Source: Macrostomum lignano (Eukaryota). From it: a stretch of DNA of 64,000 nucleotides. The notes beneath the pieces are model-generated. The model was given only the letters and a program-made list of their open reading frames with translations, was not told the origin of the DNA and ran no database searches. Where the stretch lies: NCBI GenBank assembly GCA_002269645.1, contig NIVC01001946.1, forward strand, positions 62,001 through 126,000, written 5' to 3'. Of this stretch, positions 1,994 to 52,869 are shown piece after piece. The translations under genes and the position numbers were made by a program. Positions within the stretch are counted from its first letter, which is position 1. Each line of letters opens with the position of its first letter.

Positions 1994-3088
1994 TTGGTGC
2001 GCTTGTACGAGCGTATGTGCTCGAGACTGAATTACCTCGGCGCTGGTTGTGAGACGATGTCGCCACAGTTTACTCAACTCGATTTGCAGGTAAGCGAATG
2101 CCGAGTCCTCGATAGTAGCTGGCCTAGCAACGGCACGGGCAGCAGCAGTATGAAGCTGCAGTTTTCGTGGCGCGAGTGGCAGCGCGTCAGCGGCTACTTG
2201 GAGCGAATACTTTCAACCATGGAGCAGCGACGCCTGCTCGACCACTTGCTACTTGACGTCACCGGCCTGCGAACTATCGACCTTGGCGCCGTCTGGGAAG
2301 GTGTTGTCGGAGTCGCCGACTCAGAATTTCAAAGCGTTGGCGATGACGAAGTCTTTCAGCCGTTCGTGCCGATGTCGGCCCTACCGGAGACTACAAGCAG
2401 CTTGAACTTGAACGCCAGCGCCGACTGGACCATTCATCCGGACTGGACAGACGGCAGCTGCAACAACCCGCTGCTGTACCGGGATTTCACCAAGATTCAC
2501 ATGCAACTTGGCCCAGTTTTCTCCGCATTCAACCTGGACCTGCCAACCCTGTTGAGCCAGCCGCGGCAGCCGGGTGAATTCGAAGAACAGCCAACCGAAT
2601 CGGTTGCCAGCCCGACAGCAGATTGTCCAAGCAGGGTGTCAGTGTACGGCTACAGAGCTAATCGTCGGGTTAGCAACGCTAGAGCCTTAGATTTGCCCAG
2701 CTACGCTCAGGCGTTCTCGGATCGGGTGGCCGACTTGGTGCGATCCCGGTGCGCCAGGCTGGGCCTGAGCTACCTGGTCTCGGGCGCGCAGTACCACGCC
2801 TCGCACAATTGCCTGGTAGTCAGCGGCACGGCGGACGTTCGTTCGCTGCTACGACAGAGCGGCGGCATTGAGCTGCGCTCGTGGGTGAACCCGGAGGCCG
2901 AGAGTCAGGAGCTTGCCGACCAGCTTCAACGATCCATAGGGCGAAGTTTCGACGGCCTGATGGAGCCCAGGGAGCAGCAGTCCGGCTCGAAGTATTTTCC
3001 CATGGTGATGTACTACTGCGACAGTCGCAAATTGGTGACGATCATCTACGGGCTTGAGCCAAAACGCGACGGGCCACCAAATGAGTGA
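1994..3088 (+). CDS. Uncharacterised protein, 364-aa open frame (probable large exon; true start unresolved)
   Basis: 1.1-kb stop-free, GC-rich, non-repetitive frame between AT-richer flanks, with globular-looking composition. I recognise no family. Possible upstream exon at ~1749-1854. Confidence 0.6.
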   Translation: MVRLYERMCSRLNYLGAGCETMSPQFTQLDLQVSECRVLDSSWPSNGTGSSSMKLQFSWREWQRVSGYLERILSTMEQRRLLDHLLLDVTGLRTIDLGAVWEGVVGVADSEFQSVGDDEVFQPFVPMSALPETTSSLNLNASADWTIHPDWTDGSCNNPLLYRDFTKIHMQLGPVFSAFNLDLPTLLSQPRQPGEFEEQPTESVASPTADCPSRVSVYGYRANRRVSNARALDLPSYAQAFSDRVADLVRSRCARLGLSYLVSGAQYHASHNCLVVSGTADVRSLLRQSGGIELRSWVNPEAESQELADQLQRSIGRSFDGLMEPREQQSGSKYFPMVMYYCDSRKLVTIIYGLEPKRDGPPNE

Positions 3089-11974: not shown

Positions 11975-12945
11975 ATAACAACAACAACAGCAAAATACGC
12001 TACTCCGCATGCAAAGTCACAGTTAAAGCAGAGCGCGTCAGATGGCGCGCCGCAGAGCCTGAGAGTGGACGAAGTCCGCCCCGTTGGCAGTGTCGGGCGC
12101 CCCAGCGTCGCACAGCAGGCAGTCCACGTATCGACGGGCTTGAGCCTGAGCCCGCCTGAACGGACACTGCAAGGTGAGCAGCAGGACGTCCTGGACAGGT
12201 TGGGGGCAGTAGCCCTCGGCTCAGATCACGTGGCCCGCCAGTTGAAGTCACCGACGGCGCAGGATGGTGAACGGGCGCTGCAGCTTGGCCCGATCGTACA
12301 GGGCCTCGGTCCCGACGCTCTCGTCAGCTCGAAAGGCCGCACGGAGCAGCCCTGAGTGCGCCGAGTCCAGCTGCGGCTCTAGCGTAACCGTCAGCGTCCA
12401 CATCTCGGCGTTGTAGAGCAGGACGGTTTCGACCACCGCCTGCCACAGCCGAGCCCTCTGGCGGTCGGGCAGCGCTTCGGACTGGACGACGGCCCGGGAA
12501 CGGAAGGCCGCCCAGGCAAGTCCTCTGCGCCGCCGGAGGTCTTCCTCCACGTGAGGCACCAGACCGCCGAGGTAGGTGAACCGCTGGCAGCGTGCGAGCC
12601 TGGTCGTCTGCACGTCTGCGCCGCGGCACGTCAGGTCCGCTAGGATGTCGGCCGGCACAGTCAGCACCTCGGTCTTCAGCGTGTTGACGATCAGACCGAC
12701 GCTCGATGCCAGCTTGACCAGCCTGTCGATCTGGCGCTGGGCGCCTTCAGCGGACGAGGACAGGAGGGCGAGGTCGTCGGCGTAGCCAAGCACGCTTAGG
12801 TGCTTTTGGCCGTGGCGGCGACCGATGCGCCTGAGCAGCAGGAAGCCGTCGTTAGCCAGCGTGTCGCCCTGCAGAAGTCCTGATAGAGTGTCGAACAGTT
12901 CAGACAGGCCGTCCGCCGTCACCACAGCAGCTCGAGTGCACTTTA
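11975..12945 (-). mobile_element. 5'-truncated non-LTR retrotransposon (RTE-like RT C-terminal half) with (TTG)n tail
   Basis: Minus-strand ORF with LLQGDTLA, GYADDLALL, FTYLGG, LLYNAEMWTL. Coding continues in a shifted frame to a stop near 12040, followed by a short 3' UTR and TTG repeats (plus strand ACAACAACAAC ~11977-11990). Confidence 0.9.
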
Positions 12946-14198: not shown

Positions 14199-14837
14199 AT
14201 GGACTTCATCGCAACAGCAGCAAAGTTGGCAGCCAAGCCAGCGGCGATTGTGGGTGCAGGACTTGTTGGCGGCCCAGTGGCGTCAGCCGCTGTGTCTGCC
14301 GCTTTCAATTACAAATCTTTACTAGATAACATTGTAGACGAGAATTACACCGGAGCTGCTCTCGACACGGCTCTTCTGGCACTCGACGTTGCTTCAATAG
14401 CGACTCCTCTGACATCTACTACGAGAACTACCTTAACTACCAAGAGCTCAAAGACACTGGTGGGCTCTGCAGCAAAGCAAGGAGCAGCCAAGACAGGAAA
14501 AGAAGTTGCAAAGTCCGGAGTAACTCATGGTCTAACGTGTACTGGAAACGTCACGCGCACTACGGTCAATGCAGGTGTGAAAGGTGCTGCAGCCAAAAAG
14601 TGCGTAGAGATGTTCGGGAAAAACGCAGTTTACGAGGCCTGCACGACTGAAGTAAAAACGAAAGTCGAGAAGAAGCTGGTGGAAGAGGGCGGAAAAGTCC
14701 TGGTTGAAAAAACTATTACTACTACGACGACAAAAGCCACGCCTGAAGCTATTAAAATCGGCAAAGAGGTCTTCGGCTACGCTAAAACAGCTGAATTTGG
14801 TGTGAAAAACAAAGAACTAATTAAGCTCTTGCACTAA
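14199..14837 (+). CDS. Intronless Ala/Thr/Lys/Val/Gly-rich orphan protein, 212 aa
   Basis: ATG-initiated, non-repetitive DNA, GC higher than the flanks, AT-rich 3' region after the stop. No family recognised with certainty. Confidence 0.6.
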   Translation: MDFIATAAKLAAKPAAIVGAGLVGGPVASAAVSAAFNYKSLLDNIVDENYTGAALDTALLALDVASIATPLTSTTRTTLTTKSSKTLVGSAAKQGAAKTGKEVAKSGVTHGLTCTGNVTRTTVNAGVKGAAAKKCVEMFGKNAVYEACTTEVKTKVEKKLVEEGGKVLVEKTITTTTTKATPEAIKIGKEVFGYAKTAEFGVKNKELIKLLH

Positions 14838-15634
14838 AGCTGTCAAGAAAAAATTAATTGATTAATTAATTCTAACTGGTCCGGACGGCGTCGGAAATTT
14901 CGAGAAACAGAAGGTTTACTTTCAAAATTTAAAAAACAAAAAACAGTTTATCACCTTTACGCACTATCCTAGACTTTACAGTATAGTTTTTACCCTTCGA
15001 ATGTTTTTTTTCAAATACCAAGGACTGTCTTGTACTTTTGCTGGTTAGTAACACGCATAATCTACTAGCGTACACTGACTGTAACTTTAAAGCGTACCTG
15101 TCATTTCGATTCTTTTTGTAATTTTACAAAAAATCTCAATACAAAAAATTTTTTGAATTGAGGAAAAATTTTAATTTTTTATTACTACTTGCAGTACTAT
15201 ATAGAGCTCGCCCATTTGCATGCATCTATCTTTTTCTTTACATTTTTATCACTTTCTAGAATATTTTCTTATTTCACTATCAAACTTATGTGGCATGTTG
15301 TGCGAAATTGTTTTATGATAACAGGTCAATTCTCAGTGCAAACGTGCAGTAAAACGATGTAATAGTACTTGTTACAATGCGTAAATACATTACAGAACCG
15401 ATCAAGCCAAATTTATGCATTCAATCAACATTTTAGGCTTCATTTCAGAAGCCATAATAGTTCTTTAGTAATAGCTTTGTATTGCGAATTGCATATGCAG
15501 ATAGCATTTTAGATAGATACAAACCATTTTTTAGTATAATTGACGTTATAGCAAGCATTATCGTTTAGAAATCTAAGTTTAGCGCATCCTTGTTGAATTC
15601 TTATTTTTGAGATTGTAAAGCTCATTTTGACAAC

Positions 15635-16830
15635 CAAGTTTAGCGTCTCTGATGAGAGTCTATAATGGTGTAGTTTGTGAGGCTCAGTTTGACTGTAGGA
15701 CACACCGAGTTTAGCGTCTCTGATGAGAGTCTATAATGGTGTAGTTTGTGAGGCTCAGTTTGACTGTAGGACACACCGAGTTTAGCGTCTCTGGTGAGAG
15801 TCTATAATGGTGTAGTTTGTGAGGCTCAGTTTGACTGTAGGACACACCGAGTTTAGCGTCTCTGATGAGAGTCTATAATGGTGTAGTTTGTGAGGCTCAG
15901 TTTGACTGTAGGACACACCGAGTTTAGCGTCTCTGGTGAGAGTCTATAATGGTGTAGTTTGTGAGGCTCAGTTTGACTGTAGGACATACCGAGTTTAGCG
16001 TCTCTGGTGAGAGTCTATAATGGTGTAGTTTGTGAGGCTCAGTTTGACTGTAGGACACACCGAGTTTAGCGTCTCTGATCAGAGTCTATAATGGTGTAGT
16101 TTGTGAGGCTCAGTTTGACTGTAGGACACACCGAGTTTAGCGTCTCTGATCAGAGTCTATAATGGTGTAGTTTGTGAGGCTCAGTTTGACTGTAGGACAC
16201 ACCGAGTTTAGCGTCTCTGATCAGAGTCTATAATGGTGTAGTTTGTGAGGCTCAGTTTGACTGTAGGACACACCGAGTTTAGCGTCTCTGATCAGAGTCT
16301 ATAATGGTGTAGTTTGTGAGGCTCAGTTTGACTGTAGGACACACCGAGTTTAGCGTCTCTGATCAGAGTCTATAATGGTGTAGTTTGTGAGGCTCAGTTT
16401 GACTGTAGGACACACCGAGTTTAGCGTCTCTGATCAGAGTCTATAATGGTGTAGTTTGTGAGGCTCAGTTTGACTGTAGGACACACCGAGTTTAGCGTCT
16501 CTGATCAGAGTCTATAATGGTGTAGTTTGTGAAGCTCAGTTTGACTGTAGGACACACCGAGTTTAGCGTCTCTGATCAGAGTCTATAATGGTGTAGTTTG
16601 TGAAGCTCAGTTTGACTGTAGGACACACCGAGTTTAGCGTCTCTGATCAGAGTCTATAATGGTGTAGTTTGTGAAGCTCAGTTTGACTGTAGGACACACC
16701 GAGTTTAGCGTCTCTGATCAGAGTCTATAATGGTGTAGTTTGTGAGGCTCAGTTTGACTGTAGGACACACCGAGTTTAGCGTCTCTGGTGAGAGTCTATA
16801 ATGGTGCAGTTTGTGAGGCTCAGTTTGACT
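15635..16830. repeat. 71-bp tandem satellite, ~17 copies
   Basis: TATAATGG recurs at 15661, 15732, etc. (period 71). Units are contiguous with no spacers; many units contain the palindrome CTCTGATCAGAG. Confidence 0.97.
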
Positions 16831-16989: not shown

Positions 16990-19604
16990 TCACAGAAGTG
17001 GAACTCCTCGCAGCAGCATCTCGCGACACGAATCTAGCAGAGGCAGCGCTTCAGCGGGCACTTCGGCCAGCAGCACAGCTCGACCTCCTGGACCTGCGGA
17101 CGCGATGGCCATCACTGAACCAGTTAAACCCGGGGATGCCTTCGCTGGTCTGAAGGCCGTCAGAGCGCCGATGTGGCCGCCGCGACCAACTCTGCCGATC
17201 TCGCGGCCTCGTTCGTCGACTGCAGCCAGCCAGCCGTCATCGAGGACGAACGTCAACAACCTCAGCGCCATCGACTGTCGATGTCCGAGTGGCCTCGTGC
17301 GCACAGCGTCGGCCAGTTCGCCGAGCTGCTCGGACGGCAGGCCGGCCAGGGCTGGCGACGTGGACAGGGCTTCGACAAGGCGGCTACGACGTCTCTGCAG
17401 CCCCGGCAAGACAATGGTGCGAAACGTGCGCCGGTCCAGAGTCCACAACGAGCCGGGCGTGATGGCTTTCACGCTGACCAGACTCGCTGGACCGTCGACT
17501 ATGGCGATGCTGGATGCTGAGGGCAGCAGGGCGGACTCTCCGAAGCTGCCGGAGTCGCGGTAGCGGTGCACCAGTCGCACGGAGCCGTCGATGGTGGTCA
17601 CCTCGGCGGTCGTCTGGAAGCTGCCGTCTCGAATGAGCAGAAATTGGTCGCCGGCCTCGCCGCGGCCGAGCACAGTCTCGTCTGCGGGTTTTGGACAAGG
17701 GCGAGGACTACTGCTAAATAGAAGACCCTGGATTGGTGTTGCTGAACATCTAACTGTGCAAGGACTTCTAATATAACAAGTGGAATTTCTATGCTACGAA
17801 CTCATCAGAGGTGCTCTTTTAAGACCTGGGGGTAATCTCTCCAGATCTTGGTCTCCTATTCAGGTCAGGTACCCGTGGTTCTCTCAGTTGGTTGGTAGTC
17901 TCTTCAGGTATTGGGGTAATCTCTTTAGTTAGAGGGTAGGAGGGTAATCTCTTCAGGTCGGAGGGTAATCTCTTTAGGTCGGAGGGTAATCTCTTAAGGT
18001 AGTGAGGTAATCTCTTCAGATCGGAGGGTAATCTCTTCAGATCGGAGGGTAATCTCTTCAGGTCAGAGGGTAATCTCTTCAGATCGGAGGGTAATCTCTT
18101 CAGATCGGAGGGTAATCTCTTCAGGTCAGATGGTAATCTCTTCAGGCCGGAGGGTAATCTCTTCAGATCGGAGGGTAATCTCTTCAGATCGGAGGGTAAT
18201 CTCTTCAGATCGGAGGGTAATCTCTTCAGATTGGAGGGTAATCTCTTCAGGTCGGAGGGTAATCTCTTCAGGTTGGAGGGTAATCTCTTCAGATTGGAGG
18301 GTAATCTCTTCAGGTCGGAGGGTAATCTCTTCAGGTCGGAGGGTAATCTCTTCAGGTTGGAGGGTAATCTCTTCAGATTGGAGGGCAATCTCTTCTCCCC
18401 CAAAACAGCCACATTAACGTTCTACATCATCCACAACAAAAATACAGCGATTTTAGTTTAAAACTCGAATTGGAACTGTGAATTTTATTTGTTTTAATTA
18501 GCCCATAAAAGCATATTTGAAGGTTAAATATCAAACCGATGAAAATTTAATTCGAAAAAGTTCAACGTGAAATTTTAACTGTCCAAATTTAAGGTGATCT
18601 GAGGCTACACTGTTGTAAAACTGGGTACAAACCTGAGGCAGTTGATAAAGTCTAGAAATTAAATTTCAAAATCCTGATTTGTCACAATAGTTTCAATAGA
18701 GACTTTTTATATTTCTACATTTGTCTCAGTCTTAAAAAATACGTTTAATAAATCGAAAAAGCAACAAGAACAATAGCCATTGTACTGTTCAGGATATAAG
18801 TAAACTAAAATCTGCATGCATATAGATTAACAAATGTATCAATCGAAACAGTACTCACTAGGCTGTACCAGCCTGACTCGCATTGAGTTAGCCAGCTGGT
18901 TGAGCAATGTGTCATCCAGTTCTTGAAGGCGATGTACACCGCGAAGTGCGGCCAGCAGTTGACGGTGTTCCTTTGGAGACAACTGAGATTTTTTCTGAGT
19001 ATTTCAATGCAGATATAAGGCTCGTAAGCTTGGTGTGTTTATTTCTATAAGCTCGAACAGTGGCTGTACTATCTGGGGCCACCTTGGCTTAACTTGTGGT
19101 AAAATGATTAACTAATCTATGATATTAATCTGTGATAGAGTGACTGTTTATTGATGGATGGACTGACTGTTTATTGATGGATGGAGTGGCTGTTTATTGA
19201 TGGATGGAGTGGCTGTTTATTGATGGATGGAGTGGCTGTTTATTGATGGATGGAGTGGCTGTTTATTGATGGATGGAGTGGCTGTTTATTGATGGATGGA
19301 GTGGCTGTTTATTGATGGATGGAGTGACTGACTGGTTGATAACGGATTAAGTTAATGTTCACACAACCAAAAGAACCTGCTTATCATCAAATATCAATAG
19401 TGTATTGTGAAAAAACCTTGCACAATAACCACTAGTTATTGAGGCTAAATGCATTCTCACCGTCTCATCTTGACCCGAGCCAGGCCGATTTAACAGGCCA
19501 AGAAACTCGACAACGGAATCTCCAACATCCACAACGCTGCGCCGTAGTGTGCAGGCCAGGTGAGTGGCCTGACCTGTCGACGGCAGCTGAAATTGGAAGG
19601 CCAT
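16990..19604 (-). CDS. Degenerate PKA type II regulatory subunit-like protein A; complement join(19461..19604,18859..18982,16990..17681), 319 aa
   Basis: Three exons with GT-AG sites sum to 960 nt with consistent phases (0,1). Exon 1 resembles the RII dimerisation/docking helix pattern (QLP..LRRSVVDV..VVEFLGLL). Exon 2 (LQELDDTLLNQLANSM) and exon 3 (ETVLGRGEAGDQFLLIRDG..SFGESALL..LWTLDRRTFRTIV) match cNMP domain A, followed by a decayed domain B. Confidence 0.8.
17930..18395. repeat. 21-bp intronic minisatellite (GGAGGGTAATCTCTTCAGATC)
   Basis: 21-bp periodicity inside intron 2 of gene A; source of the LKRLPSD ORF. Confidence 0.96.
19140..19335. repeat. 23-bp intronic minisatellite (GTTTATTGATGGATGGAGTGGCT)
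   Basis: ~8 copies, period 23, in intron 1 of gene A. Confidence 0.93.
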
Positions 19605-20464
19605 ATCGGTCTAAGAAGCAAGCAGAAGCCTTGATGTCCTGTCCCAATTTTTATGCCAGTCCAGAGCACAGATGCCATGCCGGATGAGTTTCTGTCCAAT
19701 CAGACAGGGCTTCATGATAAGGCGGGAAATAATTTCGAAATTCTGTTGCTCCAACGAAATAGATACTTTATGATTTCTTGATCTCGTGTTCGCTGTTTAT
19801 CTGGGACAGTTGGATGGATAATAAGAATGTTTAAAAGTGTGTACATGTACAACCATTCAACAATAGCAACCCGCCAGCATCTCACATCCGACATCTTCAG
19901 CGAAAATGACTGACGCTTGTGAACATTTCATCCGTTTCTGACTAGAGATTTCTGTGTTTTTTTTTAACAATGCAAAAAATTATTCAGATTACGACAGATT
20001 CCAATTACTTCTATGCACTTTTATAGATATCAAAATGCTAAAAGATTATCACATACCAAATTTTTTATTCCAAAACGGCGATACCGGGCAGACAGGATTC
20101 ATAAATGGAGTTCATAATCGAAATTGAAGAAAACATTCCGATCCAGTACTACAGAGAAAATGCGTTTTCCACTTGCTCCGGTGCCCCGCTCAGCCCGACG
20201 AGCGCTAAATGCATAAATCGAGTATTTAACTGCTGAATAAGTCAGTTGACAAGGCCCGGGTAATTGACACAAGGCCCCACCAGGGCATTCTAATGAGAGC
20301 TCAAATATTAAAATTATGTCAAATCCTTGTAATCGATATTGTGCTTAAGAATTGTGCTCAACTGCAGACTACTCTCAGTAGCATGCTATTAAAATTAGTT
20401 CAGAGGTTCTAGGCTTTAGTTTTACTCTTTTAGTCTGCCTCTCCACTCTCACAATCAGTCTTTA

Positions 20465-22060
20465 AATCTGCCGGTCGCATCAACTGGACTGCTGTTCCGC
20501 GGCCGTTTGAACTGCGGCACACACCTCCGCGTACTCGGCACCTCCCCGCTTGCCGCCGAGCGCCCCTGTCCTTGAGCCAGTATGGCAAGACGACCCCGCG
20601 ATTCGGCAAGCAAGAGCTGGAGAGACTCCGTTTGAGCAGGCGATTAACCCGCGAGGCAGAGGTGGCTAATTTGGCGGCTGTCTATCTGCAGCTCCAGCAG
20701 GGTGCTGTTGATGACGCCATTCGGGCCGTCTCTGCCGCTGGGCCCGATGCCGGAGGCCGTGTGGCTCGGTCGGCTATCAATGCTCTGACGGGGCGAAAGC
20801 GGCGCATTCCGCTCAACCTGGCAGGCGACTCTGCAGACGAGCGCAGGAACGAGCTGCGTGAGTTCTTCGCCGCCATCGTCAATGCGCCGCCACCGCCGCT
20901 GCCAGACAGTCTGACGCTGCCGCCGGAGATGCCGCTGCCGGCTGAGGAGAGCTTCAGCCTAGCACCAGTCAGCACAGCCGACGTTGTGAGGCTCACCCAA
21001 CAGTCACCAGGCGGGAAAGCGCTGGGTCCGGACGAGGTGCCCATCGAGGCGCTGCGCATCCATTGTGTGGCCAGTGAGGTCGCCAGAGTGATGAATCGCG
21101 TGCTCTTCGGTGAGGCGGCACCCAACGAATGGACCACGTAGCACATCGTCGCAGTTCCTAAGAAGCCAGGCACCACGAGGCTTGAGGAGCATCGAGGTAT
21201 CTGCCTTCAGTCGTGCGCTGCGAATTCGCCTCGGTCGTCAGGTCTGTGCTCCCAAAGGTGCTCCGTGCGTAAAACGTCCCAGAGCAGCGGATTTCCGCCA
21301 TCATGGCGATGTACCGTGATACGAAAGCTGCTGTTTCAACACCGGACGGCCTATCGGACTTCTTTGAGACATCCTCCGGGGTGCTTCAGGGAGATACGCC
21401 TGCGCCGTTCCTGTTCGTTCTGGTGCTTGACTGGGTGCTGCGGACCGCTCTTCCTACCAACGAAGACGGCTTTCTGTTGCGGCGACGCGTGGGTCGACGT
21501 CAACCGGAGAGACGGCTCAGCGAGATTGGCTACGCCGACGATCTCGCGCTGCTGTCCTCAACTGTCGAGCGCGCCCAGCGACAACCGGACAAGCTAGTTG
21601 CTGTTGCGGCGAGTGTCGGCCTGGTGGTCAACACGCAGAAGACTGTCGCGCTCTGCGTGCCGGACGACATCGAGGCTGCGATTTTGTGCCGAGGCGCTGA
21701 TAGACAAGCGACGGAGCTCCCGTGTTTTCAGAAGTTCGTCTACCTCGGCGGTCTGGTTCCCGGCGTCCGCAAAGATTTGCGGCGTCGCCGCGGGCCTGCC
21801 TGGGCTGCCTTTCGTTCTGTGAGGGCAGTTCTGCAGTCCGAGGCCTTACCTGACCGCCAGAGTGCGGCGTTGTTCCAGGCGGTGATCGAGACCGTCCTGT
21901 CGTACAACGCCGAGACCTGGACGCTGATTGTTGAACAAGTTGACGCAGTGCACGCTGGCCTGCTGCGTGCCGCCTTCAAGTTTTGTATCACTGCGCCGGC
22001 CTGGTCTTGGCCGGATTTGGCCGGCGGCGTGGCGTTCACTCGCGACCTGGCCCTGAGGCG
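20465..22060 (+). mobile_element. Decayed non-LTR retrotransposon (RTE-like), internally deleted
   Basis: Pre-RT and RT motifs: KALGPDEVP, IVAVPKK, GVLQGDTPAPFLFVLVLDWVLR, GYADDLALL, FVYLGG. In-frame stop at 21139-21141; RT N-terminal block missing. Clearly homologous to the copy at 12 kb. Confidence 0.9.
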
Positions 22061-22439
22061 CGCCCTGCGACACCCTGTGACATTGAACGCGTATTTTAAT
22101 ATTGTTGAACCCGCCTCTCCGCTCTCCTCCCTAACTCCTGGAATCTGTCTTTTTGTTCCCTATTTTGTTTTCTTTTAAAGCCGCAAGCAAAAATCTTTTC
22201 AAACCATTAAAATCGTGGATGCAAATTGCGCAGAAAATCACCTGCCTAAATGTTGGATTGCTGTATAGAAAATATCTAGAACATCTCCGGTTCGGTTAGT
22301 GCGTCACTTATAAAAATGTTTTTTTTGTCGGAACACCTGCGTACAATTACTTGTGTATAATTGATCCAAAATGCTCGAGGCTATAAATCCCCCTGGTTTT
22401 AAGATAGAAATGAAAATTTTCTAACACAAAGCTTAAGAC

Positions 22440-24385
22440 ATGGACGCAAAAACGGAAATTGGGAAGGCAGCGACGATCATTGTATCCGCTGTGTTGGAGT
22501 TTGCGGATCGAGAGGAGTTTCAACTTGTTGCCGACACAGTTGCCAAACTGGTGAGAAGGCTGCTGCCGCTTGTTGGCAGGGACAAACTACTGGCACGTGT
22601 GATGCATCAACAGGAGACAGTCTTGCTGGTGAGAGTTTCCTTTTGTTCTCGGGGGCGCAGTAGAGATGAAGAGAGAGGAACGGAGAGGCTGAGGAGAAAA
22701 GAAGGAAGAGAGGGAGGCAGAGTTGGAAAGAGGAAGGGAGATAGGAAGGGAGAGAGGAAGGGAGAGAGGAAGGGAGAGAGGAAGGGAGAGAGGAAGGGAG
22801 AGAGGAAGGGAGAGAGGAAGGGAGAGAGGAAGGGAGAGAGGAAGGGAGAGAGGAAGGGAGAGAGGAAGGGATAGAAAAAGGAAGGGAAGGGAGAGAGGAA
22901 GGGATAGAAGGAAGGTAAGGGAGAGAGGAAGGTAGAGAGGAAGGGAGATAAGGAGGGTGAGATCCAAATTAGCCTGGTTCGCTAGTTCGATATGTTAGAT
23001 ACATATGTTCGCTATGTTCGTTATGTTAGATAGGTTCGCTAGTACATGTATGTTAGACAGAACCGAATAAAAACCACAAATTCGACAGGGCCTGCTGCAG
23101 ACTCAGACGCATTCCGGATTTCAACGCTCTCGAGGAGACTGACCTTGGCGGCATCGCCGATGCGATGCGACAGTTAACTGTGCTGCAAAGTGAGTGCAAA
23201 TAGTTCAGTTCATGTTGCATTTGTCTTAATTGGTTGCTTTTTTAGCAGCGGTACATGTACATGTAAATTGGAGAGCTGGGAGAGTTGCATGGAGGATCTT
23301 AATGAGACCCTAGCACACCCACTTCACTCCGGCGTGTCTGATTGGTCAGTGGGCTTTACCCAGCACACTCACCTCACTCCGGCGTGTCTGATTGGTCAGT
23401 GGGCTTTACCCCAGCACACCCACTTCACTCCGGCGTGTCTGATTGGTCAGTGGGCTTTACCCAGCACACTCACCTCACTCCGGCGTGTCTGATTGGTCAG
23501 TGGGCTTTACCCCAGCACACCCACTTCACTCCGGCGTGTCTGATTGGTCAGTGGGCTTTACCCCAGCACACCCACCTCACTCCGGCGTGTCTGATTGGTC
23601 AGTGGGCTTTACCCCAGCACACTCACCTCACTCCGGCGTGTCTGATTGGTCAGAAGGTTTTACTCAGCACTATCTGGGAGAGTCAGTGTAGCTCACTGTA
23701 TAAAGCAACCCCATCCCCACAGACGAAACGCTGACAGGCAGCCCCAGCTCCGCCAAGCGGCTGGTAATTGAAAGCGGCAGCTACCGCCTCGAGACGAGGC
23801 AGCGACAGCCAGACGGCTCCGAGTTGGTGTCCCACGAATACTTCAGCAGCGGCAACTTCGATTTGGCTGGTAACTCCGCCATTTCAGTAACGTCAATAAC
23901 GGCTGGTTCTCTGTGGACGCTGGAGCTCCGATTGATCATGCCGACAGTGCGTCGTCGGCGACGCCAGCTCAGTCTGGCCAGATCGCCAGCTCTAGCCGGT
24001 CTTTCAACCGAGCGTCTGGCGGCCTTGACCAGCGGCTTCCAGATTCTGCAGCCTGGCATGCAGTCGGTTAGACGGCCTATTATTCGTTGTCGACGGTGGC
24101 TGCGTCGATGTACTCGGCGATGACGGCTGTCGGATTAGCCGAGTTGACATCGGCGGTCATTTGGCTGCCGGCGACAAGGGGCCGACGATCGGCAAGCCGA
24201 CGGCTCGACTAGCCGCGGTGGCAGCAGGTGGAGCTCTGGGCAGTGTGAGAGTGGCCAGGGTTAGCGGTACAGCGCTGCTGCGGCTGCTGCTGGAGTGTCC
24301 CGGACTGCTGCACTGCGGCACCGCGGCTTGCGGACCGCAGACCGCCTGTCGGGAGCACTGCGAGGGTTGCCGCTTCCAACTATAA
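22440..24385 (+). CDS. Degenerate PKA type II regulatory subunit-like protein B; join(22440..22628,23057..23189,23723..24385) with a 1-nt frameshift near 24070 (pseudogene or assembly indel)
   Basis: Same exon layout and intron phases as gene A. Aligned segments: ALEETDLGGIADAMRQL vs ELDDTLLNQLANSMRV; ITAGSLWTLE vs ITPGSLWTLD; ARSPALAGLSTERL vs STSPALAGLPSEQL; and after the shift LFVVDGG..ISRVDIGGH vs TFVLDDG..IGRVGRGGH. Confidence 0.7.
22730..22950. repeat. 12-bp purine minisatellite (GGAAGGGAGAGA)
   Basis: Exact periodicity in intron 1 of gene B. Confidence 0.95.
23310..23655. repeat. 50-51-bp tandem repeat, ~7 copies
   Basis: GGCGTGTCTGATTGGTCAG recurs at 23331, 23381, 23432, etc.; intron 2 of gene B. 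Confidence 0.95.
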
Positions 24386-24409: not shown

Positions 24410-24785
24410 ACTGGAATCCAGCCTATTAGTGTTTGGAATCCAGCTTGCTAGTGTTTGGAATCCAGCTTGCTAGTGTTTGGAATCCAGCTTATCAGTGTTT
24501 GGAATACAGCTTATCAGTGTGGAATCCAGCTTGATATTGCGTGGAATCCAGCTTATCAGTCTGTGGAATCCAGCTTGTTATTGTGTGGAATCCAGCTTAT
24601 TAGTGTTTGGAAACCAGCTTGCTAGTGTTTGGAATCCAGCTTATCAGTGTTTGGAATACAGCTTATCAGTGTTTGGAATACAGCTTATCAGTGTGGAATC
24701 CAGCTTGATATTGCGTGGAATCCAGCTTTTCAGTGTGTGGAGTCCAGCTTATTGGTGTTTGGAATCCAGCTTAACTGCGAGTGGA
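24410..24785. repeat. Degenerate ~22-bp minisatellite (GGAATCCAGCTTATCAGTGTTT)
   Basis: Recurring GGAATCCAGCTT core. Confidence 0.92.
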
Positions 24786-26747: not shown

Positions 26748-33186
<6,439 letters not shown>

Positions 33187-35269: not shown

Positions 35270-35480
35270 GTCAGTGCAGTGATACAAAAGCCACATTGGT
35301 CACTCGCATAGGCGATCTTGAAGGGGGCACACAGCAGGCCAGCATGCGCCGCGTCAACTTGTTGCTTGACAGTGTACAGCAGAATGGTCTCGATCACCAC
35401 CTCGCCTGGAACAATGCTGCTCTCAAGCGGTCAGCTGTACATTAAGCTGGCCTCGCGGACTGCAGGACTCCCCAGACTAC
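35270..35480 (-). mobile_element. Small decayed fragment of the same RTE-like LINE family
   Basis: Minus-strand VIETILLY..QQVDAAHAGLLCAPFK matches VIETVLSY..EQVDAVHAGLLRAAFK of the 21-kb copy. Confidence 0.75.
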
Positions 35481-44426: not shown

Positions 44427-47400
44427 CAGGGGCGCGTCGAGAGGTTTCAGGATGGGGGGGCCCAGTTGGGGCCCAGTAAAAACTGAAAGGGCAACATCTC
44501 GAATAGAGTGTACATTTTTTAATTACAAGTATTGTAAGAGAAAATTTTCATCGAAAAGCAAAAATGACATCCAAAAATACCTCGCAATGAATGATTGCAA
44601 TTGTTTAGTTAATTTAAGAAAAACGAACATTCTAAATCACTAAATGGTTCTTGTTTTTTTTGCCCAAGAAAATGCTTTTGAATATTTTTTGCTTTGTCAA
44701 GTTGTTTAGTTTTGTAATTGGAAGACTTTAAACACAAATGCATGCATGTTACTTTTTCCAGCAGATTCTCGTCAAAAAACTCCGTTGGTTACTCCTTTGG
44801 AAGATTTCATGCATTTACTACACATTGAACCTTCATTATTATAAAAAATAAGAAATGCCGACGTTTAAAATTTTTATGCATTCTTCAATGACCTCATTAA
44901 TAATAGATATATACCCAGCAAGACAAAATTTTCCACACTTCTCTTGACAGAATTTCATCTCTCTGTTTGAGTGACAAACAAGGACAACTTGATAACAGTT
45001 ATCAAGTTGTCCTTGGTGACAAATTGGAGACTCTGGGCCACAGACATTTATTCTGATACATGTATGCGCATTGAGATACATCGAGATAGAGTCTGATAGA
45101 CCAGACCATAGAAATCTAAGCTAGATATCTATGGATAGACAGTTTTTGTAATTGTAATTTGTCTATGGTCGAACTGTTGGATTAATTCGCCACTCAACTG
45201 AGAGACAAAATTCTCCTAAGAAACGGATGGGGACACTTGTCTTGCTGAGTATGCATGCATGGTGCATAAAGTACATTTGATGATCGATGATAGGTTTAGT
45301 GAAAACACGTCAGCGTAGAATGAACTTGAATATGAATTTACAGTAACACTTTACCACCCACTTCATCACAATCACCATACCGGTACATAACATAACAACA
45401 GACCTTAACATGAATGCATGCATATATACATATTATTTAATATATATACATAATTTAAAACAAATCAGCCAATTCGATCAATGTGTATACACACGTACAT
45501 TCGTATACCTTTGAACGATACATGAAACAGGTAGCAATTAGTAGCAATGACAATGAAGTGAAAAATGACAAGTAATGTAACGTACATAAATGAAGTATGT
45601 ACAGAATAAAAACGTAAAAGCAACATACATATACTGTAATACTATACATGTACATACATTAGTCAAGTGGCCGTAGCAAATGTAAATTGTCTTAGCGAGC
45701 AAAATAAGTCATAAAATTATGTTAGACTTATTCGCCTATTAGAATGGGCAGACGCAAATTCATCAACAAAACAGTCAAGATCAATTATTGATGCTCGCTC
45801 GTTTTCAATCGACAAAAGAGCCAGATTTGAAAGTCAAGAAGATGACATTCGACTTCTCAAGTACGTCTTGATCAGGCGCATTTTCGAAAAACTGCGCTCC
45901 GCTGATGCTGTTGTTACTGGAATAGTCAAGCATATGATGAGAAGCTTGTACAACTCAGGGAAAACCTCTCTGAATGGGTGCAACATCTCAGCAAATGCTT
46001 TTAAATCAGTCAAGCTGCCATTGCCCTTTCTCTCAATCAGACGCTTTACTTGAATTACCTCAAGTTTCAGGAACTCTTGGTCACATTTGAATAGGCCTCC
46101 TAAATCCTCCAGCTGTGAAGCGTCCAAAAAACAGTCCGAGTTTGGCTTTAAAGAACCAATTCCCTTAAAGAGAACAGCTGTTTCATGGTCAAATCTTTGT
46201 CGCATTTCCGACAATAGGCAGTCGATCACCGATAGATATACATTAATTCGAAATCCGTTTGCTCCAGATTCAGAGTTGCGCTGAGCGACATGATCCCTTT
46301 CAAAAGTTACAAACTGATCGAAGCGCTTATTTGGGCGTTTTGTTTGTCTGTTTGGTTCTGGCTCAGGTATATTCCACTCATTACCTAACTGCTGGGAGTC
46401 CAGAAATACTTTCTCTAAGAATTCGTTGCTGTCGCGCAAAGTTTGGAATTTGGTGATTGTTGACTGTGCCAAATCAACAGCAGAAGCAAGGTCTAAATCT
46501 TTTTGTTGAAGGAAATCCGATAGTGCCTTTGTGCGAGTCAGAATTTCGCACATAAGAACTAGCCTTAGTACGAAGCTTCGGGTCAACTGAGCTAAAATTC
46601 CAGTGGCTTCAACAACACGATCTCCGGAGTCCTGCTCCTTAATTTCTTTTAAAACGGAGAGAATCGCGCCAATACGATTAAGAATATTGTTGCACGCCTT
46701 CTCTCTGCAGGCCCATCTCGTGTCTGAGAGGCGCTGAAGCTCTAAGGCTGGCTTTCCAAGATAGAGTTTCTTCTGGTGGTCAATAAACTGAGGATGAACA
46801 ACTAAGTTTGACATAAAACAGTAGAGCTTCTGCACAAGAGAAAAGAAGTCCTCAATCTAGGGCACTGATTTGCAAGCATCAACAAGACATAGATTCAGGC
46901 AGTGTGCATAGCAGTGTATGTAAATTGCAAGTTCCGACTTGTCTCAAATCAGCTTTTGGAGCCCATTATGAACTCCGCTCATCACTGAGGCTCCATCATA
47001 GCCTTGGCCAACTAGAAATCGGTGTCTAGGCCATATTTCTGAAGGCTTTCTACTAGTGAGTTAGCAAGTGATTGGGCAGATAGTCCTGAAGCAGGTTTAA
47101 ATTCCATAAAGACTTCCTGCACTCCTTCTGAATGCTTGTAGAAACAAATGATTAAGGAGATCATTTCAACCTTAGATATATCCTTGGCCTCATCTACAAT
47201 CACAGAAAAATATTTGGCTTCTTGGATGTCGTTTACAACAACATCACGGACCATGTCTGCCAGAATGTTAATAACTTCATTTTGAATTGTGTCACTCGTG
47301 TACTTTGCATTCTTCTTCTGTTCAGATATCTTCTTCTTTATTATTTCGTCATGTCTGCCAATCAGCTTCAATAATACTTTGAAGTTTCCAGGATTTACTT

Positions 47401-49008
47401 GCTCATCATTTTCGCGATGCCCCCTTTGGGCGATGTTTTGAGTTGCTGTAAGAAGTAATACTTCTCCTACACACTTAATGAAGTGCCTGTTCTCAGCTAC
47501 CTTAGCTTTGTACGTAGCATCAAGCTGTTTCAATACAGTTCCTTCAGTGTCTTTCATTACTTTGTAGTCACACCATGCTTGCATTGCTAAACTGTGGCAA
47601 TGAGAGCGGGCATGCTTTTTAAAGCCTGCATCCTGACACTGAGCATTTTTCCAGTTGCGGAATCCCTGAGTAGTAAAAGATGGCTCTTCTTGCATAGATG
47701 GAGGCGCGAAGTGGCGGCAGGGAAAGCAAAAAGCAGAATCCTTCATTTGCAAATACTCAAGCCACTTGTAAGTCTCAAACCACGAGAATTGAAATGAACG
47801 GGACTTTTGCTTTGCCTTATCCGTTCCTGTGGAGGATTTTTACAAATTTTTACATTGATTTTTACAAACTTTTAAAAAATACGTCTATATCAGTATAGCT
47901 AGCCTTAGCCACTAGCACTAGCCACTAGTAACCATTAGCACAAACAGTATTATATAAATAACTGTCGACTTACTGCCTGAAGTTCCAACTGATTTTGGGT
48001 AGTTCCGCAAAAATGGCTGACAGGGTGGATCGTCCTTATTCTGGGAAATATCACATAGGGCCTTCGAAGAAGGTTGCTCAATTGTTCTACTGTCTGAGGC
48101 TAACTCTGTGGCAGTGGCAGCGGTAGCTGTCTCAACTAGAACAGGAGTGCCAGGAAAATTTGTTTCAGAGCCAGTCAGTTGAGCATCCTGTTCAGACTCC
48201 TGATCCGCAATCGTAGAGATGGCACTTGGTTGATCCTTATGCCTTTTCGCCTGGCTATCAGTTTTTTCGCCTGGACCTTCATCATCTTCTCGCGGGTCTG
48301 AGCTAGGTCTTTTTAAAAAACTTCGAATATCAGGCCTCTGCATTGTTGGCCAGGCTTCTTTAATTCAATTCTTAAAAATACATTTCCGTTTTTTTGAACC
48401 TTAAGACTTAAGAGAGCAGTAGCTAAAGTGTGACTTAAATCTTAAGGGGCAGAGGGGCAATGCTCTGTAGTCTTTTACACACTGCCTGAATGTATGATGG
48501 TTTAACTCTTTGTCCCTGTCCAAATGTACATTTATCAGCACGCTTCTCCCTTCCCTTTCTGTCTGTCCTATCCCTCCTTTCCCTGTCCCAGTGCAAGTGT
48601 TAGGCTATACGCGTGGGGGAGGGGGTTGGGGGGTTGGAAGGATACAGCCATATAGACTGAACAGTTAGATAAAAACAATAAAGTCTGAGAGGCAATGCAC
48701 TTTATAATTAAAGTTAGACAAAACCAAAAACACCGACAGATACTATAAAAACAAACGAAACGAAATTTGCCATACTATCAGATCAGAAAGTAAAGAATAA
48801 TGTACCCATGTAAAGTTATGCTCGTGTAAAAACTTCTAGTATAGTAGTATTGTTTCTAAAATTAAAATTATAAAAAGGTTTTTCAATTTTTTTTGAAAAA
48901 ATTCGACGTTCAGAAGTCAGAACTGAAAGTGGGGGGGCCACAGGGGGGGCCTATGGCCTAACAAAGGGGGCCCAGGCCCTCCCTGGCCCCCCCTTGGACG
49001 CGCCACTG
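44427..49008 (-). mobile_element. Full-length hAT DNA transposon, 4582 bp
   Basis: 8-bp TSD AAGTAAAT at 44419-44426 and 49009-49016; TIRs CAGGGGCGCGTC / CAGTGGCGCGTC; G/C-run subterminal regions; internal transposase. Confidence 0.95.
45717..48343 (-). pseudogene. Disrupted hAT transposase (ZMYM1-like: TTF zinc finger, DUF4371 region, hAT dimerisation domain)
   Basis: Exon 1 48343..47974, phase-1 intron, exon 2 from 47826. Motifs: FSWF..YKWLEY..AFCFPCRHF, FSVIVDEAKDIS, GQGYDGASVMSG, YIHCYAHCLNL, RLSDTRW, PVTTASAERSFSKMRLIKTYLRSRM. Lesions: a frameshift near 47015 and premature stops near 46940, 46857 and 45834. Confidence 0.92.
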
Positions 49009-51410: not shown

Positions 51411-51618
51411 ACGATACCGACTCCAACTCCGGACCAAATAGTTAGGAAGTTTAGTAGTGAAGCAGCTGTTGGGAATACCATACCAATAAGCGCTCAAGAG
51501 GGAATAGCATCCTATCAGTTAGTAGATAGATTCCCTAGTATATCAGCTATTAGTATTAGATCGCGCGAAGCTCGCTGCAAATTAGAATCAGTTGAATTCT
51601 CGCCTTATAAAAGTGAGA

Positions 51619-52869
51619 ATGTCATTGAACCGATCCCGTTCGTTAGAGAGTGGTTCAGAGCAAATTCCGAATGAGAACAGGGGCGCAGCCGCCGCTGCAG
51701 CCGCATCTCCATGCGCTAGCCCTGATGATGGCATATTTGGAGCAGACTCAGACTTCATTAGAGGTCTTGGCGCAGGCGTAAATGCTAACCTGCTGCAAAA
51801 CCTGCTCGTAAATATGAACAGGCAGATGAATCTGCAGACTAAAAAGCAGATTAAAATCGCCAAGTACAAGCCATCAATGGACATTCGAATTTGGCTCGAA
51901 ATGTTTGAGATGAAGTGTGAGAGAGAAGAAGTCTATGACATGAGAGAGAGGAAAGCTTTAATCATGGATAGCCTAGATATGGAGACTGCCCTCGCCGCAG
52001 TTCTGCATATGAAGCTACCACATGATCTTCCTTATCACAGCTTTAGGGAGCAGCTCATTGAGCGCTTCGAGAAGCTTGGCGGCCCAAACGCCTATAGGGA
52101 AGAGTTTCGCTCTCGATTGCAGCGAAAGAATGAGTCAGTAGATGACTACGCTGAAACGCTTCAGGCACTCGGAGAACAAGCATACCCGAACCTGAGAGCT
52201 GACCAAATTGAGATAGAGCTCGTAGATGCTTTCACCCGCGGCGTACGCGTAAGCCCTGACACTCGCGAAAAGCTTCTACTGATGCAACCGGCTACGATTA
52301 TGGAGGCAAAGCGTGCGCTCAAGCGCATAGAAGCTGCGCGAGAGTTCGCCAATCGAACTCGTGACGCGCCCGTCAGGATGATGCAAGATGACTCGCGATC
52401 ATCAGAGCATTCCATCCCCAAAGGCCTCCAAGAGTTGATGACAAGGCAGACAGCCGCGCTGGAACGCCAGCAGCAGGCTACGCAGCAGTTGCTTGAGCTT
52501 GTAAGCTCGCAAAGCGCGTGTCCGCCAAGACTGCAGCAGCCGAGAGATGCGCATCACCAGCAGTCCCGCTGGTCGAGCAACGTCGAGATTCCGAGATACC
52601 GACAGCGTGCAACATGCTATAGCTGTGGCCAGGAAGGCCATCTTCTCGGACAATGTCAACGCTACAAGGAGCAGCAAGCGCTCGGAAAGCGCTATTCGTG
52701 TGAACGCTGCGGAGAGTCAGGACATGCTGTCCAAGACTGTCACGCGCGTGGTGTTGATCGACAGTACAAGAAGAAAGTTTCGGGAAACGGCGCCGCAGGC
52801 GGTTGCGACGGCAACAACCCCTGCGCCAACAGCCAAGAGCCCGCAGCCAAGAACACCCGGCGACAGTAA
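51619..52869 (+). CDS. gag: Gag with two CCHC zinc knuckles
   Basis: First ATG at 51619; capsid-like region (LQRKNESVDDYAETLQAL); CYSCGQEGHLLGQC and CERCGESGHAVQDC. Confidence 0.93.
   Translation: MSLNRSRSLESGSEQIPNENRGAAAAAAASPCASPDDGIFGADSDFIRGLGAGVNANLLQNLLVNMNRQMNLQTKKQIKIAKYKPSMDIRIWLEMFEMKCEREEVYDMRERKALIMDSLDMETALAAVLHMKLPHDLPYHSFREQLIERFEKLGGPNAYREEFRSRLQRKNESVDDYAETLQALGEQAYPNLRADQIEIELVDAFTRGVRVSPDTREKLLLMQPATIMEAKRALKRIEAAREFANRTRDAPVRMMQDDSRSSEHSIPKGLQELMTRQTAALERQQQATQQLLELVSSQSACPPRLQQPRDAHHQQSRWSSNVEIPRYRQRATCYSCGQEGHLLGQCQRYKEQQALGKRYSCERCGESGHAVQDCHARGVDRQYKKKVSGNGAAGGCDGNNPCANSQEPAAKNTRRQ
52782..52824 (+). promoter_or_regulatory. -1 programmed ribosomal frameshift signal
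   Basis: G GGA AAC heptamer in gag frame (52782-52788), 6-nt spacer, then stem GCAGG-C-GGTTG pairing with CAACC-CCTGC. Pol is in the -1 frame and open from the heptamer. Confidence 0.85.

Follow-up and report, generated by a model that had tools for sequence, protein, structure and literature searches.

A head-to-head pair of degenerate PKA-RII-like genes in Macrostomum lignano

We investigated a pair of genes within a 64,000-nt stretch of the Macrostomum lignano genome (contig NIVC01001946.1 of assembly GCA_002269645.1, positions 62,001 to 126,000 of the forward strand). The whole stretch is called the window in the following, and all coordinates refer to it. The two genes point away from each other, one on the minus strand with its ATG at 19604 (minus gene) and one on the plus strand with its ATG at 22440 (plus gene), i.e., 2,835 nt lie between the start codons, and each consists of three exons (Table 1). 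A preliminary description, made from the sequence alone, had taken both for degenerate, highly diverged paralogues that resemble the type II regulatory subunit (RII) of the cAMP-dependent protein kinase (PKA). The homology searches, profile scores and structure models reported below confirm this kinship, while the plus gene turned out to carry a frameshift and neither product contains the N-terminal dimerization domain of RII.

Two outward-facing three-exon genes

All four introns have the form GTGAG..AG and measure 428-1177 nt, with phase 0 for the first and phase 1 for the second intron in both genes. Exon 3 starts with CAG/AC GAG ACT in one gene and with CAG/AC GAA ACG in the other (the slash marks the splice junction). 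The intron-1 positions of the two paralogues agree only within about three codons in the protein alignment. The outward orientation with a distance of 2.8 kb, the identical intron phases (0,1) and the common start of exon 3 (CAG/AC GAR ACN) had all been described before and are reproduced by our gene models. For the plus gene, the phase pattern depends on TAG at 23054-23056 as exon-2 acceptor, which alone preserves both frame and homology. A more obvious 'ttcgacag' acceptor at 23088 was dropped, since it is out of frame. The exons of both genes are GC-rich (59-63% GC) and set in AT-richer DNA that is packed with minisatellites.

The spliced frame of the minus gene is intact and encodes 319 amino acids between the ATG at 19602-19604 and a TGA at 16990-16992. 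It contains no stop codon, compared to 7-10 stops in each of the five other frames of the coding sequence (CDS), and shuffling this CDS with its composition retained gave a stop-free frame in just 2 of 20,000 cases. In addition, the GC content per codon position follows the coding pattern GC1 > GC3 > GC2. The ATG at 19604 is supported by homology of the N-terminus to that of a short RII-like protein from M. lignano (MSGQRLFQLPSSGQAAVFASNLRRSVTDIGDSVV; P0152, introduced in the next section). A pyrimidine tract with an AG is found 6 nt 5' of this ATG (ttctgcttgcttcttAG, within 19605-19625 on the minus strand, AG at 19611-19612). This AG could be a candidate spliced-leader trans-splice acceptor for the minus gene; 38.8% of M. 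lignano genes are reported to be trans-spliced (PMC5730564).

For the plus gene, one continuous frame from 22440 to the TAA at 24383-24385 had been assumed. While the two gene structures and their paralogy stand, this single frame does not, i.e., an additional base at 24067 in exon 3, directly after ATG CAG TCG (ending at 24066), had been overlooked. The base is located in a GG dinucleotide and not in a long homopolymer. Because it shifts the frame, the genomic reading frame ends already at a TGA (24121-24123) after 240 amino acids. Beyond 24067, the alignment with the paralogue carries on in the +1 frame for 105 further codons up to the TAA. Both these 105 codons and the frame ahead of the shift are free of stops, and the product read through both frames is called the joined plus product below. 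A tiny intron was rejected as an explanation of the shift, as no GT..AG pair restores the frame without loss of conserved residues. The case illustrates that a clean-looking exon model can conceal a frameshift. A pattern search found no AATAAA within 700 nt 3' of the plus gene.

Table 1. Exons, introns and neighbouring sequence features of the gene pair (window coordinates; CNB, cyclic nucleotide-binding domain).
Feature	Position	Strand	Description
Poly(A) signal AATAAA	16909..16914	-	76 nt 3' of the minus stop codon; pattern match only
Minus exon 3	16990..17681	-	692 nt; CNB-A beta-barrel, aB/aC helices, degenerate CNB-B
Minus intron 2	17682..18858	-	1177 nt, GTGAGT..CAG; 21-nt x 22 minisatellite at 17935-18395
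Minus exon 2	18859..18982	-	124 nt; N-terminal helices of CNB-A (LSPKEHRQLLAALRGVHRLQELDDTLLNQLANSMRVRLVQP); followed by a phase-1 intron
Minus intron 1	18983..19460	-	478 nt, GTGAGA..CAG; 23-nt x 8.6 minisatellite at 19134-19330
Minus exon 1	19461..19604	-	48 codons, begins MAFQFQLPSTGQATHLACTLRRSVVDVGDSVV, includes the inhibitor-site-like motif RRSV; followed by a phase-0 intron
Putative minus core promoter	19644..19700	-	TATA-like ATAAAAAT at 19647-19654, ~45 nt 5' of the ATG; CCAAT at 19696-19700; read from sequence
LINE-type fragment	20460..22180	+	Degenerate, 5'-truncated; Pfam RVT_1 37 bits, YADD motif, internal stops; ~60% of the spacer
Plus TATAAA box	22382..22387	+	53 nt upstream of the ATG; read from sequence
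Plus exon 1	22440..22628	+	63 codons; three helices predicted; DREEF in place of the family's RRSV; followed by a phase-0 intron
Plus intron 1	22629..23056	+	428 nt, GTGAGA..TAG; GA-rich 12-nt x 18 array at 22725-22948
Plus exon 2	23057..23189	+	133 nt; followed by a phase-1 intron
Plus intron 2	23190..23722	+	533 nt, GTGAGT..CAG; 51-nt x 6.8 array at about 23307-23670
Plus exon 3	23723..24385	+	CNB-A-like to 24066; CNB-B-like frame 24068-24382; TAA 24383-24385

Relation to type II regulatory subunits and between the copies

We compared the conceptual products of both genes with each other and with known proteins. The minus and plus products show 33% identity over 213 amino acids (BLASTP, E 3e-23) in an alignment that crosses the frameshift unbroken, which confirms the claim of highly diverged paralogues. 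With regard to further copies, tblastn detected no third one in the window, such that there are just two. A search for a DNA-level inverted repeat between the genes gave short chance matches only, and the duplication is thus considered old.

A cNMP_binding domain had been expected in both products. The respective Pfam profile matches residues 86-179 of the minus product with 44.8 bits (cut-off 27.5), while the plus product shows no Pfam match at all. The top six PDB sequences for the minus product all belong to RII-beta or RII-alpha (E 4.6e-16 to 1.2e-14), with PKG, RI and protist regulatory subunits ranking below. HMMER was run exhaustively with minus exon 3 against 1.84 billion representatives and returned a single outstanding match (P0001, E 3.9e-37, 49% identity), followed by generic multi-CNB proteins. 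P0001 corresponds to UniRef A0A1I8IVE7, an M. lignano protein named 'cAMP-dependent protein kinase type II regulatory subunit'. Its full-length cluster-mate P0152 (314 amino acids) is encoded on a 1003-nt Logan contig (L001, SRR28338166) that lacks introns and probably represents a transcript. Among 277 fetched proteins, the plus copy likewise finds its best match in P0152. That is, this short RII-like protein (P0001/P0152) is the closest relative of both window genes, with 46-49% identity to the minus copy.

To relate the copies to RII in general, we scored them with a profile derived from some 100 canonical RII sequences. The scores are 287 bits for P0152, 86 bits for the minus product and 21.7 bits (E 9e-5 at Z = 20,000) for the joined plus product, whose alignment covers both CNB domains. 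The AlphaFold2 (AF2) model of minus exon 3, derived from a 46-sequence alignment, shows two beta-barrel domains with a mean predicted local distance difference test (pLDDT) score of 79.9, and its confidence is low exactly at both phosphate-binding cassettes (PBCs). Foldseek relates this model to PKA regulatory subunits (probability 1.0, E ~1e-11, ~235 aligned columns). Since the alignment drives the model, we take the fold as support and not as independent proof. Tandem CNB domains (PF00027) are thus found in the minus product via model and Foldseek, while the fold of the plus product is deduced from its RII-profile match and its paralogy only. The same lines of evidence, together with Pfam and the PDB ranking for the minus product, bear out that the pair encodes degenerate PKA-RII-like proteins.

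The relationships are also reflected in a neighbour-joining (NJ) tree based on 249 ungapped columns and 300 bootstraps, for which RI sequences were left out. The minus and plus products group together with 87% bootstrap support, the trio with P0152 is found in 100%, and the trio joins lophotrochozoan RII in 99%. The phylogenetic grouping of the two genes, put forward earlier as a check of their common origin, is therefore observed, and long-branch attraction may contribute to it in part. Judged by the PDB ranking, the name of the nearest protein and this tree without RI, the pair has its closest affinity to RII, with RI, PKG and other CNB proteins being more distant. The earlier view of an old inverted duplication in a lineage-specific family is a fair reading of the 87% and 100% nodes and of the missing DNA-level inverted repeat.

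In RII of Aplysia, there is no intron at the position matching QP/NE, and the region covered by exon 3 of the window genes is spread over several exons. Given this difference to a single comparator, the shared three-exon structure with phases 0 and 1 seems to be a derived trait of the family and not a generic RII feature.

P0152 and the window genes have several features in common, i.e., a short N-terminus without RIIa (FQLPS.GQA...LRRSV.D.GDSVV), the motifs QPNE, IVLP and QRRR, an Ala-rich insert in CNB-B and a C-terminus of the form LL.SC..LL. They differ in that the PBCs of P0152 are canonical (FGELALLHNQPRSATVKA and FGEAAMLEGRRRTATVVA), whereas the arginines of these cassettes are lost from the window genes. 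Against the RII profile, P0152 reaches 287 bits compared to 86 (minus) and 22 bits (plus), and its GC content at third codon positions (GC3) is 0.88 compared to 0.64-0.67 in the window genes. Compared to canonical metazoan RII (PRKAR2A/B; PDB 1cx4, 3tnp, 2qvs), which provide the best sequence and fold matches, the window genes have the same tandem CNB-A/CNB-B arrangement, but they are without RIIa, show RRSV instead of RRxSV (minus) or no such motif (plus) and have lost the PBC arginine in both domains. The window family clusters with lophotrochozoan RII, while its gene structure is unlike that of Aplysia RII. On these grounds, the pair is best filed as degenerate members of a Macrostomum-type RII offshoot that is devoid of the dimerization/docking (D/D) domain.

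The Macrostomum short RII-like protein (P0001/P0152/P0159) is itself unusual for an animal, as it combines a length of 314 amino acids, no RIIa domain and RRSV in place of RRxSV with intact cAMP cassettes. From this composition, a monomeric regulatory subunit may be presumed. In the literature, a search combining Macrostomum and PKA gave no relevant result.

Nucleotide pockets, N-termini and coding constraint

The PBC arginine is replaced in all four pockets, i.e., by serine at site A of both copies, by alanine at site B of the minus copy and by threonine at site B of the plus copy. The PBC glutamate is retained only at site A of the minus copy, and the same cassette contains a 9-residue insert. 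To quantify the remaining conservation, we selected the positions at which canonical RII sequences agree to 80% or more and P0152 carries the same residue. Of these 90 alignment columns, 47 are retained in the minus copy and 33 in the plus copy. The best-preserved parts of the minus copy are the aB/aC and N3A-B region (13/16 columns) and the N-terminal RRSV..GDSVV segment.

RIIa (PF02197), the module of the D/D domain, does not match either product at E ≤ 1 in Pfam. The two products thus lack the defining module of ROPN1/SPA17/CABYR-type proteins. Only 20 residues precede RRSV in the minus product, and the N-terminus of P0152 is equally short. A search upstream of the minus gene for an exon encoding a D/D domain showed only AT-rich sequence filled with stops. 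Since the short N-termini of P0152 and the minus product are homologous, we conclude that the whole family is without D/D domain. Within the inhibitor region, the minus product reads LRRSVVDV and P0152 reads LRRSVTDI, each one residue short of RRxSV, while the plus product shows DREEF.

It had further been suggested that the two products heterodimerise via N-terminal helices. Three helices are indeed predicted for plus exon 1 (single-sequence AF2, pLDDT 76), but a fold search with this model gave nothing significant (best E 4.6) and no match to a D/D fold. With no RIIa domain, a minus N-terminus that is too short and plus helices without D/D match, RII-like helix heterodimerisation is not supported. 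Residues 7-22 of the plus product (22458-22505 on the plus strand, IGKAATIIVSAVLEFA) fit a loose amphipathic-helix pattern. The pattern has three overlapping or nearby matches in the 45 N-terminal residues of the plus product, compared to a rate of 0.09% per position in 277 proteins. Such a pattern is used for the RII-binding helices of A-kinase anchoring proteins, and the resemblance is a weak lead only.

Selective constraint was assessed by Nei-Gojobori comparison with the CDS of P0152, which results in proportions of synonymous (pS) and non-synonymous differences (pN) of 0.66 and 0.37 for the minus copy and of 0.68 and 0.49 for the plus copy. The pN between the minus and plus copies is 0.49. 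Taken together, the stop-free frames, pN/pS and GC3 indicate relaxed but real constraint through most of the genes' history, which does not necessarily extend to today.

A possibly bidirectional promoter between the genes had been suggested as well. Bidirectional pairs usually have head-to-head starts less than about 1 kb apart, one common promoter and co-expression. Here, 2,835 nt separate the two ATGs, a fragment of a long interspersed nuclear element (LINE) of about 1.7 kb lies in between, and each gene has its own TATA-like box. For these reasons, a shared bidirectional promoter is not supported, and the boxes argue for, but do not prove, separate promoters of the two genes. The LINE fragment shows 70% DNA identity to a copy at 12391-12850 (-), and a 3' piece is present at 35317-35434. 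Given these further copies in the window, it is considered a dispersed repeat that was inserted between the genes.

Each 51-nt unit of the array in plus intron 2 (23307-23670) contains a CCAAT-box-like near-palindrome, CTGATTGGTCAG. Within the putative minus promoter, TTCTGTCCAATCAGACA at 19690-19706 is a 17-nt, 94% complementary match to it. The match may be due to chance or to a common factor-binding motif.

Interpretation and further features of the window

With moderate confidence, we read the pair as duplicates under relaxed constraint, of which the minus gene possibly encodes a cAMP-insensitive pseudo-regulator while the plus gene is most likely a recent pseudogene. The pair would go back to an old inverted duplication of a lineage-specific, RII-derived gene for a PKA regulatory subunit, in a family without the RIIa D/D domain. 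Both copies would have been under relaxed constraint and are without the cAMP-contacting residues of both CNB domains. The minus gene is intact and spliceable, and its 319 amino acids keep the tandem CNB fold, the aB/aC region and RRSV. Its protein might dock as a monomer on the PKA catalytic subunit without being released by cAMP; expression, catalytic-subunit binding and cAMP insensitivity are properties that we infer, whereas gene models, homology, phylogenetic grouping, absence of RIIa, loss of PBC residues, frameshift and LINE insertion are shown. Having lost the RR pair and diverged much further, the plus gene with its 1-nt frameshift would most likely be a recent pseudogene, at best encoding a truncated protein of 240 amino acids. 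Both genes would have separate core promoters, and the LINE insertion lies between them.

Several observations weigh against this reading. Binding of the minus product to the catalytic subunit is unproven, since its RRSV is one residue short and its PBC-A carries the 9-residue insert. Because synonymous sites are saturated, the dN/dS of about 0.33-0.5 indicates constraint only roughly and should be taken as an upper bound whose tightness is uncertain. The decrease of GC3 from 0.88 in P0152 to 0.67 (minus) and 0.64 (plus) also fits decay. Exact look-ups of both gene models, of the exon-3 open reading frame (ORF) with several starts and of eight other ORFs of the window matched nothing. Two word-indexed searches, for which the full minus product and an alignment of the N-terminal halves of both products served as queries, gave no near-identical protein, which is a weak negative because the same searches missed P0001 with its 6 five-residue words in common with the minus product. 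Finally, the frameshift of the plus gene could be an assembly error.

Some of these points lead to the view that both copies are non-functional, decaying relics of the Macrostomum short RII-like gene, with the intact minus frame being a leftover and not the result of selection. Such decay would be in accordance with the arginine loss in all four cAMP pockets, the insert in the minus PBC-A, the drop in GC3, the plus frameshift, the lack of a matching protein or transcript in large collections (exact look-ups and word-indexed searches) and a region rich in transposable elements and satellites. We nevertheless regard it as unlikely, since a neutral 319-codon frame with saturated synonymous sites is expected to have acquired several stops, while the minus frame has none, a state reached by 2/20,000 shuffles and by none of the other frames with their 7-10 stops. 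Furthermore, canonical splice sites are still present in 4/4 introns, pN is well under pS, and the 105 codons beyond the plus frameshift are still open. If, on the other hand, the base at 24067 was an assembly error, both genes might be functional and represent a flatworm family of monomeric, cAMP-unresponsive proteins, which might be gated by a different ligand or function as anchors or constitutive inhibitors. The plus frames before and after the shift are stop-free, the RII profile aligns over both CNB domains of the joined sequence, the intron structure is conserved between the copies, and the trypanosomatid PKA regulatory subunits set a precedent, as they lost the PBC arginines and bind nucleosides (PMC10959531). 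We consider this quite improbable, given that the plus copy scores just 21.7 bits against the RII profile with 33/90 conserved columns, has neither the RR inhibitor pair nor a nearby poly(A) signal, and contains the extra base within a GG dinucleotide and not in a long homopolymer. In addition, neither copy shows the ribose-binding glutamate substitution of the trypanosomatid proteins.

Co-expression from a shared bidirectional promoter combined with heterodimerisation through N-terminal helices, in the manner of RII via its D/D domain, seems highly improbable to us. The head-to-head arrangement and the three predicted helices of plus exon 1 would agree with it. Yet the 2,835-nt spacer contains the 1.7-kb LINE fragment, a TATA-like box is located beside each ATG, RIIa is missing from both products at E ≤ 1, the minus product has just 20 residues ahead of RRSV, and the plus helical model lacks a significant fold match (best E 4.6).

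In the usual description, regulatory subunits of animal PKA are dimers gated by cAMP. The family of flatworm type has shed the D/D domain, and its two members studied here have shed the cAMP-contact residues as well. Should the intact copy be expressed and still bind the catalytic subunit, an animal would possess a natural, cAMP-blind inhibitor of PKA, which would be useful for studying how CNB pseudo-receptors evolve. If it is not expressed, the pair would represent the ordinary decay of duplicates in a genome that is highly duplicated and rich in repeats. A more far-reaching idea, to which we assign a low probability, is that the minus gene, and possibly the wider Macrostomum short RII-like family, forms a monomeric, cyclic-nucleotide-independent lineage of animal PKA regulators. 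The RRSV pseudosubstrate and the CNB-A surface would then hold the catalytic subunit, resulting in a constitutive brake or in a regulator gated otherwise, and the lineage would be a metazoan parallel to the cAMP-independent PKA of trypanosomatids.

The trypanosomatid regulatory subunits may serve as the nearest functional analogy. Their PBC arginines are replaced by polar residues, and cAMP is no regulator of the enzyme (PMC10959531). The pockets have been rebuilt, including an Ala to Glu replacement, and bind purine nucleosides with nanomolar affinity (PMC10959531). Trypanosomatid structures (PDB 6flo, 6hyi) are among the fold matches of the minus model and share the replacement of the PBC arginines with it. 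The window proteins do not show this rebuilding. Their PBC-A contains an insert, their PBC-B is gapped or substituted, and they belong to an unrelated lineage.

Besides the gene pair, the window is rich in repeats. Mutually unrelated minisatellites are located in all four introns and in both 3' flanks (15629-16830, 17935-18395, 19134-19330, 22725-22948, 23307-23670, 24412-24773). Among them, a 71-nt x 17 array immediately beyond the minus gene is 98% homogeneous. Since about 20 arrays are spread across the 64 kb, the minisatellites look like a genome-wide habit and not like a feature of the pair. A large array at 29957-32239 consists of about 143 copies of the 16-nt unit TATCTCCGACACTTCA, has a GC skew of -0.63 and causes spurious ORFs of 770-780 amino acids in two frames. 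In its repeat content, its intron sizes and its load of transposable elements, the window matches the published description of the M. lignano genome (PMC5730564).

Scanning the window for Rfam families and tRNAs gave no match. Two sizeable ORFs at 1994-3088 (+, 364 amino acids) and 14199-14837 (+, 212 amino acids, rich in Ala, Thr and Lys) do not match Pfam. On the minus strand, a remnant of a hAT-family transposase spans 45834-47752 in two ORFs, one with DUF4371 (47012-47752) and one with the hAT dimerisation domain (45834-46835). The coding region of a Gypsy-type long terminal repeat (LTR) retrotransposon is found at 51592-57755 (+). Its gag-like ORF (51592-52869) shows a weak zinc-knuckle match, and its pol ORF (52803-57755) runs uninterrupted over 1650 amino acids with reverse transcriptase, RNase H and integrase domains. 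Going by this domain check only, the element may be young or active.

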